Source: Blastocystis sp. Blastoise
Lineage: Eukaryota; Protista; Bigyra: Opalinata
Reading direction: 5' to 3'
Length of the DNA stretch: 64,000 bases
Assembly (NCBI GenBank): GCA_039096225.1
Contig: JBBPEB010000030.1
Coordinates: 248,001-312,000 of the forward strand
The first letter of the stretch is position 1. The number at the start of each line of letters is the position of its first letter. The position numbers and the translations under genes were made by a program. The notes under the pieces were generated by a model. It had not been told where the DNA came from. It searched no databases and was given only the letters and a program-made list of their open reading frames with translations. Shown here one piece after another: positions 33,052 through 35,485 of this stretch.

Positions 33052-35485
33052 ATGTTTCGATCATTTGCGACTCGATTCACTCAGTCTGTTGTACGTAATA
33101 TAAAAGCAGAAGGAAAAGCTACAAGTAAAGCACTCATTCGTGGTTTATCTAGTGCTAAACAATCTGCTTCTCATAACTCATATACATTACCTCTTGTTTT
33201 TGGTAGTGTTGCAGCTTGTTCAGTCGGCTTTGCTGCATATCAATATAAAAATAATGTTCTGAATGTGAATGCAGAAGGTTTAACTGCTCCAAATATGAAA
33301 AAAGGTAGTCGTATGGTTGGTTTTATTGATCGTTATTATATTTCAGGTATGTAATAAAATTTATTCTTATTATTGTTTTCTTGATGTAATATAAATTCTA
33401 CATTATCTGTATGTATATCAATAGATATTGTTGATAGTTGTATGCCTGGATTAGTAACAATTACTACTGGAAAAAGAGTATGGTTAGGTACTCTTACAGG
33501 TTGTGGAAGTGGGTTTATCATCAGTGAAAGTGGATTAGTAGTTACGAATTGTCATGTAGCTTTAGGTCAAGATGCTCTTATTGTAAGTAATTATTATGCT
33601 TATTATTATTTGTTATTGTTTATTACTTATTATTTATTATATGTTATAATATGCAAACTACTGTATACCATATTATTAAAAATATCATAATGATTATTAT
33701 GATTATGATTATGATTATGATGATTATAGGTAAAATTAAGTGATGGTTCTTCTGTAGAAGCTAAGATTTTTGCATATGATGAAGCTACAGATATATGTTT
33801 ACTTCAATTACCTCCCCGAGAAAATGGAAAACCTTACCAAGCAATGAAATTAGGATCATCAGATAAACTTCGTGTAGGTGAATGGGTTATTGCTATGGGT
33901 GCACCTTTAGCTCTTGAAGTATTTTATTTTTATTTTTATTTTTAGCTTTTATTTCATAGTTTTTTTTAAATATTATTTTTAAATATATATATATATATTT
34001 ATTTTTGTTATTATTGTTTATATATTCTTTAAGTAAATATATTTATTTTACAATAATAAATTGAATACAATACAATTCATTGTTTCTTTTATTTCTTTAT
34101 TATTTTAAATTATTATAAATCTATATATATATATATATATTTATAGCAATCTGTAGCTGTAGGTGTTATTTCAACATTAAATAGATCTACAAGTACTATT
34201 GGCCTTAGCTCTTATAAAACACCTCTTATTCAAGTATATATATAGAATTATTATTCTATTGTTTTTATATTTTTATTATATATTAATAAATTTAAATAAT
34301 TTTTAGAGAATTTCACATAATATTATTTTTCATTTAATAATTTCATCTAATTTTTTTTATACTATTAAATTATCTTTAATTATTTCCTTATATATATATA
34401 TAAAGACTGATGCTAGTATTAATCCTGGTAATTCTGGTGGTCCATTAATTAATTTAGATGGTGAAGTTATTGGTATATATATAATAAATAGACTCTTATT
34501 ATTTTAAATATATATTTATTATTTTTAATACTAATAATTTTTATTCACAATTTATTATTATATATAGGTATAAATACATTAAAGATACAACAGGATGGTG
34601 TGTCAGGATTAGGATTTGCTGTTCCTATTGATGTTGCTAAACAAGTAATAAAAGAATTAACAGAGTTTGGTAAAGTAAGACGTATTGAATTAGGTATTCG
34701 TTGTTTTGCTTTAACTCCTCAAATATGTAATGTATATATATTATATATTTATATTATATATTTATATTATATATTTATATTATATATTTATATTATATAT
34801 TTATATTATATATTTATATTATATATTCCTATTATATATTCCTATTATATATTTATATTATATATTTATATTATATATTTATATTATATATTTATATTAT
34901 ATATTTATATTATATATTTATATTATATATTTATATTATATATTTATATTATATATTTATATTATATATTCCTATTATATATTCCTATTATATATTTATA
35001 TTATATATTCCTATTATATATTCCTATATTAATTATATGTAACTATAAAATAGAATGAACGTAAATTGAACTCCGATTTCCCTAATATTGATAGTGGCTT
35101 ATTTATTACTCGTGTTATGCCGGGATCACCTGCTTCTCAAGCTAAAATTAAGATCCATTATACTTTTTTTTTTAATAAATATACATATATATTTATAACA
35201 TCTAAATATTAAATATTCATAACAATATTATTCTTAATTATAATTTACAGGAAGGAGATATTTTAGTAGCTGTAAATGATAAACCAATTCATTCAACAGA
35301 TGATTTTGTCAATTATATTGTTAAAGGAGTATATATAACTTATATATATATCATTATTAATATGAATCTCTGATAATCAAGGATAATAATAATAATAATG
35401 TTAATTATAGGAACAAAGTCATGTTAAAGTATCAATTATTAGAGATAATAAAGCATTCCAAGTTGAATTCTTTAGTGATGAATAA
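33052..35485 (+). CDS. HtrA/DegP-family serine protease with PDZ domain, probable mitochondrial-type targeting, 9 exons
   Basis: Arg/Ser/Ala-rich presequence [16 protein letters not shown] and a short TM; GSGFII, VTNCHV (His), ATDICLL (Asp), [15 protein letters not shown] (Ser); PDZ motif [13 protein letters not shown]|EGDILVAVN; stop at 35483-35485. HTRA2-like. Confidence 0.93.
34735..35030. repeat. Intronic 15-nt minisatellite (TATATTTATATTATA, variant TATATTCCTATTATA)
   Basis: Many tandem copies fill the intron and explain the artefactual YIYIIYL ORFs. Confidence 0.9.
35151..35248 (+). other. Non-canonical U12-like intron (AG-AC; equivalent register 35153-35250 would be AT-AG)
   Basis: 5' AGATCCATT; 3' TTCTTAAT-TATAATTTAC. 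Needed to keep the PDZ motif intact; no GT/GC at the junction. Confidence 0.7.

Follow-up and report, generated by a model that had tools for sequence, protein, structure and literature searches.

The seventh intron of an HtrA/HtrA2-like serine protease gene in Blastocystis sp. Blastoise is very probably a U12-type intron by descent, in a register that begins with AG and ends with AC. It lies at 35151-35248 on the forward strand of the window, the 64,000-nucleotide stretch of DNA that we analysed, and is 98 nt long, with 11% GC and phase 1, its register being set by homology. In both splicing machineries, few letters of eukaryotic genes vary as little as intron base 2, and at this intron the near-invariant T at +2 is absent, the assembly having a G at 35152. 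We regard a genuine G as rather probable, together with splicing that is efficient enough to yield full-length HtrA. With similar confidence, we lean towards the whole account, in which a U12-type intron from an AT-AC ancestor acquired a T-to-G change at +2 and a T-to-A change at +7 in this strain.

The host gene occupies positions 33052-35485 on the forward strand. In our rebuilt exon model it consists of nine exons at 33052-33346, 33425-33582, 33730-33918, 34147-34233, 34406-34472, 34568-34731, 35054-35150(52), 35249(51)-35328, and 35411-35485, where the bracketed digits give the ends in the AT-AG register discussed below. These exons encode 403 codons plus a stop, and their 1212 nt of coding sequence remain in frame from the first to the ninth. 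The other seven introns are all GT-AG and start with GTATGT, GTAAGT, GTATTT or GTATAT. The window, with a G+C content of about 21%, belongs to contig 20 of a eukaryotic assembly of 33.34 Mb in 34 contigs; no second HtrA copy was found in this genome with exon 6 as the query, and the gene is therefore taken to be single copy.

Domain searches were run exon by exon. The Pfam profile Trypsin_2 matched exon 3 with 39.5 bits (E 1.2e-9) and exon 2 under the cut-off, the GNSGGP motif is located in exon 5, and the profiles PDZ, PDZ_6 and PDZ_2 all matched exons 7 and 8, each under the cut-off on these short pieces. The predicted layout is that of an HtrA-type protein, with a trypsin-like protease domain ahead of a PDZ domain. 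Exon 7 (35054-35150) corresponds to the first half of the PDZ domain and ends on base 1 of a Lys codon (A/AG, the slash marking the junction), and exon 8 (35249-35328) corresponds to the second half. Intron 6 (34732-35053; 322 nt, GT-AG, with an RNA-confirmed junction) is, over nearly its whole length, a tandem array of units of about 15 nt, TATATTATATATTTA plus a TATTCC variant.

An earlier note on this DNA had used PDZ homology to fix the exon 7/exon 8 junction, and the profile alignment bears this out, since PDZ_6 runs unbroken from one exon into the other. Residues 17-32 of exon 7 align with profile positions 1-16 and residues 2-23 of exon 8 with positions 19-40; profile positions 17-18 are taken up by the two residues in between, so that the junction Ile-Lys/Glu-Gly is exact, with neither gap nor surplus. 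The stop that the note reported on read-through is also present, 19 codons past the end of exon 7. There is no GT between 35114 and 35266, which leaves the GTTATG at 35114 as the sole nearby canonical donor, as had been noted; this donor is in frame, but its use would remove 13 residues, including GSPA. A GC donor at 35141 is likewise in frame, but it would delete AKIK, contrary to both the PDZ profile and the ortholog, and it was rejected as well.

Within this junction, the exact cut is ambiguous by 2 nt, as the note had pointed out for AG-AC and AT-AG. The registers AG-AC (35151-35248), GA-CA (35152-35249) and AT-AG (35153-35250) give an identical spliced product, and the mRNA therefore cannot prove the register. 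Only the AG-AC register sets ATCC at +3 to +6. In this register the intron-terminal AC occupies 35247-35248, the next two bases, AG (35249-35250), belong to the exon, and the terminal bases are matched, A35151 (+1) with C35248 (-1).

We consider it highly improbable that AT-AG or GA-CA is the register in use, or that the major spliceosome, accepting relaxed ends, takes out the intron. The shared mRNA is compatible with the other registers, AT-AG is a known minor subtype that accounts for 0.9% in animals (PMC10639083), major introns with GA-AG ends exist in Blastocystis (PMC5608401), and this genome has further odd-ended introns, such as that of the neighbouring UBC9-like gene. However, the AT-AG register would place ATCC at +1 to +4, two bases off the U11 register, and its AG would lie 13-14 nt from the branch A, whereas the AC lies at 11-12 nt, within the best branch-site to 3' splice site distance of 11-13 nt given in a review that also describes AT-AG combinations as disfavoured (PMC3584512). 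The orthologous intron described below has its AT-AC ends at the homologous bases, and the 5' end of the HtrA intron is unlike the major donors of the same gene (GTATGT, GTAAGT, GTATAT).

The motifs of the AG-AC intron are those of the minor class with two departures at the 5' end. The 5' splice site, AGATCCATT (35151-35159), compares with ATATCCTTT, the form shared by the relative and the AT-AC introns of this genome. The departures are G at +2 and A at +7, the two positions that the note had singled out, and both are T in the relative. Against the consensus RTATCCTTT, seven of the nine positions match, with ATCC at +3 to +6 and TT at +8/+9. The branch-site box TTCTTAAT is located at 35231-35238, and its position is the one point that had to be corrected in the note, whose other sequence statements stood. 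The box has the appearance of a U12-type branch site, being TCCTTRAY-like and within the 10-15 nt range from the 3' end, with A35236 and A35237 lying 12 and 11 nt, respectively, from C35248.

For comparison, the window contains a canonical AT-AC intron at 57509-57671 on the forward strand, in a gene labelled TECR in the earlier note. This reference intron reads ATATCCTTTT...TCTTTAAT, followed by 8 nt and AC. The 3' end of the HtrA intron, which the note had likened to that of the reference intron, is indeed similar to it, and the spacing between branch site and AC is the same in both. The two branch boxes, TTCTTAAT and TCTTTAAT, depart from TCCTTAAC by C-to-T changes alone, and at these positions G-U pairing with U12 is retained.

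Among the minor snRNAs, genes for U11 (62.9 bits) and U6atac (63.8 bits) were found in the genome over the cut-off, and a full-length U12 candidate scored 46.8 bits, below the curated cut-off of 53 bits. The search for U4atac (RF00618, E <= 0.001) found none in the genome, and it was equally empty in 14 control genomes, so that this absence is weak evidence; a U4atac gene may have diverged beyond what the model recognises. The 5' end of U11, AUAAAGGGC, and the branch-site box of U12, GAGUAAGGAAA, are canonical. In the predicted U12 duplexes, TTCTTAAT pairs with the GUAAGGAA box of U12 through two G-U wobbles, and the duplex of the HtrA intron is as good as that of the reference AT-AC intron (-5.3 versus -5.6 kcal/mol). 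The genome also encodes three CHHC zinc fingers resembling that of U11-48K, at C31:103943-104017, C13:542955-543029 and C29:864984-865049, with 40.5, 27 and 23 bits, respectively.

The U6atac gene differs from the expected sequence in the segment that faces the 5' splice site. The only copy (C21:544821-544937, equivalent to L002:1501-1617, minus strand) reads GUGUACGUUGAGCCGAGAGAAGGUUAGCA, and its 5'-splice-site-pairing box is AGCCGA, versus AAAGGA in the Rfam consensus; the AT-AC introns of the genome nevertheless still read ATATCCTTT. A pattern search of the genome found no second U6atac copy. With an AT-AC intron pattern (ATATCCNTT, 45-75 nt, TYYTTAAY, 6-14 nt, AC) we obtained 117 matches, versus 22 in the reversed control, which indicates that minor introns are abundant in this genome, in line with the literature on the genus. 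An A at +7 occurs in 12 of the 100 AT-AC matches listed, about one fifth of matches being expected by chance, and given this share of chance matches we do not claim that A at +7 is a common tolerated variant.

The orthologous intron in a related lineage, which the earlier note had suggested inspecting, gives the most direct view of the origin of the AG-AC intron. A HMMER search with exon 3 led to two exon-sized proteins with 63% identity, and through the members of their clusters to contigs (L006 and L008-L021) from many ENA and Logan assemblies of faecal or gut metagenomes. Thirteen of the contigs, which stem from at least 12 samples, extend into the PDZ exons; all represent one lineage with 36% G+C and are near-identical to each other. 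The protein identity between this relative and the window gene is 53-63%, and the exon identities are 53-100%, with 53% for exon 7 (against the L006/L009 counterpart) and 56% for exon 8. Introns are found at seven of the eight positions of the window gene, the one between exons 5 and 6 being absent and additional ones being present inside exons 1 and 6. On these alignments, the two genes are clearly orthologous. The introns of the relative measure about 35-70 nt, and the lineage is present in many samples, its exon 3 protein being indexed in 95 blocks of the collection.

In all 13 contigs, the codon that the AG-AC intron interrupts is likewise split by an intron, in the same phase, reading ATATCCTTTATG...TCCTTGATTC(T/C)TGTTGTAC. 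In L006 it occupies positions 1323-1390 and reads ATATCCTTT...TCCTTGAT...AC, with a length of 68 nt and phase 1, inside the Lys codon A/AG; by its motifs it is a textbook AT-AC U12-type intron. The relative has the exon end ...AGA TTA A, the intron ATATCC...AC and the exon start AG CCA GGT, where the window has ...AAA ATT A, AGATCCATT...TTTAC and AG GAA GGA.

Three points follow from this alignment. With an AT-AC ortholog at the same codon and phase, the window intron is very probably U12-type by descent, which, together with the ATCC at +3 to +6, the U12-complementary branch site, and the U11, U6atac and candidate U12 genes, supports the minor-type identity that the note had proposed. The alignment of exon and intron bases makes AG-AC the homologous register, the cut bases of the relative being homologous and followed, in both organisms, by an exonic AG; the register preferred in the note is thus supported as well. 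The oddity comes down to a single T-to-G change at +2, accompanied by T-to-A at +7.

Searches for closer relatives returned little more. Apart from the two 63% proteins, HMMER with exon 3 found only generic HtrA proteins with at most 56% identity, and a word search added nothing. The cluster names held no clue to the taxonomy. Two scans of JGI metagenome contigs revealed no relative, the second giving HtrA sequences with 33-48% identity, presumably bacterial.

The T in the relative also raises the question of whether the G at 35152 might be an error of the assembly consensus, with a true T and an ordinary AT-AC U12 intron. This is apparently the assembly of Blastocystis sp. Rus-B, which started from R9 Nanopore reads and was polished with four rounds of racon and then three of PolyPolish and one of POLCA, using Illumina reads from a MiSeq run (PMC12129017). 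The R9 start and the MiSeq data leave some room for a wrong base, but against this stand the four long-read and four short-read polishing rounds. In addition, position 35152 adjoins unique coding sequence, and the change is a substitution outside homopolymers. The window contains an open frame of 3116 codons (9.3 kb), which, with the intact nine-exon HtrA gene, argues for a low rate of assembly errors, and the few RNA contig pieces on the region show zero differences from the assembly. The change at +7 would need a second error or be a real divergence, and the non-GT-AG junction of the neighbouring UBC9-like gene is confirmed, at the junction level, in two RNA runs. On balance, we consider an assembly error at 35152 improbable.

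The junction of the UBC9-like gene (35805-36017, minus strand) is an observation in its own right. RNA contigs of runs X1 and X2, which come from different studies, join 35804..35812 to 36018..36026. No GT-AG register is available there, and GT-AA (GTATTT...ATATAA) fits, the end bases being taken from the assembly only.

For the HtrA gene itself, run X1 contains an RNA contig in which exons 6 and 7 are joined exactly as modelled and which ends at 35091; the gene is transcribed and is spliced at intron 6. No RNA contig covers 35092-35680, which spans the AG-AC intron and exons 8 and 9, a gap that proves nothing; some further pieces obtained for 35031-35850 were spurious low-complexity matches.

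Two weakening changes in one 5' site, relative to the ortholog, could mark a decaying or poorly spliced site. In that case the G would be real and would cripple the site, the intron being mostly retained or inefficiently spliced through a recent mutation that is tolerated or mildly deleterious, or that is confined to one allele. Retention would end translation 19 codons into the intron and leave a protease with half a PDZ domain. The predicted U11 duplex, in its standard form, is weaker than at canonical sites, the RNA contigs are without exon 8, exon 9 or the exon 7/exon 8 junction, and the intron is a singleton in the genome, as a fresh mutation would be. On the other side, HtrA is single copy and its downstream exons are intact and in frame, and the RNA gap spans the intron as well as the exons, so that it shows no retention. 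We judge a crippled site to be unlikely, if less so than an assembly error.

Under the reading that we prefer, in which a real G at +2 is compatible with splicing, recognition of the intron can be pictured as follows. The 5' end of U11, AUAAAGGGC, would pair with two segments, UCC (+4 to +6) and UUAU (+8 to +11), on either side of one mismatch at +7. The first three intron bases are not paired by U11 RNA and are read by the U11-48K protein (review PMC3584512); judging from the human data on this protein, a G at +2 would be expected to weaken recognition without abolishing it. The U12 sequence GAGUAAGGAAA would pair with TTCTTAAT, bulging an A, and the 3' cut would be made after the AC, 11-12 nt downstream of the branch A, with the pair A(+1)/C(-1) kept. 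Joining ...ATT A to AG GAA... would then give Ile-Lys-Glu. A more specific proposal is that the minor spliceosome of this tortoise-gut Blastocystis truly removes the AG-AC intron, that its tolerance of G at +2 accompanies the loss of the canonical box in its only U6atac gene (AGCCGA in place of the AAAGGA of other eukaryotes), and that in this lineage the choice of the 5' site rests more on U11 and on proteins than on pairing with U6atac; we hold this proposal to be improbable.

The AG-AC intron of HtrA is a single case in this genome and does not represent a class. A strict pattern that required AGATCCNTT, the branch site, a spacer of 8 nt and AC had two matches in 33 Mb, versus none in the reversed control, and one of the two is the HtrA intron. 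When the distance from the 5' motif to the branch box was varied between 14 and 141 nt, the genome-wide AGATCCNTT patterns gave counts at or near the control level, and the genome-wide AVATCCTTT patterns likewise gave matches at or close to the control count. A genome-wide pattern that allowed any non-T base at +2 yielded nine matches, versus seven in the control. For candidate introns, the 75-nt flanks were joined and stop codons were counted. The +2-variant matches that were inspected proved to be T-rich DNA between genes, a non-coding repeat present in three copies, and a stretch with a normal ATATCC intron inside it; among the remaining ones, judged from 80-letter text only, some were coding-like and one was tRNA-like, but none was intron-like. 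The genome-wide search that the earlier note had advised, for introns of the NNATCC...AC kind, thus revealed no other intron-like variant at +2.

The three-copy repeat lies beside long (AAT)n tracts at C15:460282-460393, C26:605572-605684 and C34:624264-624376. It starts with AGATCCATTAC, lacks flanking open frames, and matches the AG-AC pattern by chance.

Should the G at +2 be genuine and the intron be spliced, the minor spliceosome would accept a G at this position in the A-start class, which is unrecorded in large surveys, and the intron would constitute a natural experiment on intron base 2. The relative provides the ancestral state, so that the T and G versions can be directly compared, and the age of the change at +2 could be estimated from the two further tortoise isolates that have been sequenced. 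Gene predictors that are limited to GT-AG, GC-AG and AT-AC introns will break the HtrA gene. As a single intron is concerned, the significance is moderate.

The near-invariance of U at +2, which the note had stressed, agrees with published tabulations. Larue and Roy (2023; PMC10639083) tabulated the termini of about 97,000 conserved minor introns (about 73,700 from animals and 23,300 from plants); AG-AC is missing from their table, with none among the approximately 22,000 introns of the AT-AC class. In the A-start class, the only variant at +2 is one AC-AC intron, and the G-start class has 123 GC-AG, 21 GG-AG and 14 GA-AG introns (Table S1, PMC10639083). In the literature that we searched, the terms "AG-AC" and "U12-type" occurred together only with regard to the transposon-derived introns of Fritillaria borealis (PMC11282704).

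Within its own genus, the HtrA intron resembles the AT-AC U12 introns of Blastocystis, of which there are 196 (77%) among the 253 minor introns found by Larue and Roy (2023; PMC10639083). In subtype 1, 346 U12 introns, all four minor snRNAs and all seven specific proteins have been reported (Gentekaki et al. 2017, PMC5608401). The likeness lies in the ATCC core, the branch box near the AC, the A(+1)/C(-1) pair, and a plain AT-AC ortholog; the HtrA intron differs in its G at +2, its A at +7, and its AT-shifted branch box TTCTTAAT, as well as in its 98 nt, versus a mean of about 42 nt for the U12 introns of subtype 1. The minor introns that vary at +2 (GC-AG, GG-AG, GA-AG and AC-AC) are likewise conserved despite their non-T base and keep the remaining 5' motif, but all except one are G-start.

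In the tunicate Fritillaria borealis, introns with AG-AC and AG-AT ends are excised by a modified form of the major spliceosome. Their terminal dinucleotides equal those of the HtrA intron (PMC11282704). In contrast, they are numerous, species-specific and derived from transposons, with no U12 motifs described (PMC11282704), whereas the HtrA intron is single, old and endowed with U12 motifs. A closer parallel in terms of phylogeny is provided by the 59 GA-AG major introns of Blastocystis subtype 1, which indicate that a change at +2 is tolerated in the same genus (PMC5608401); these introns are major-type and G-start and form a small class, whereas the AG-AC intron of HtrA is a singleton.
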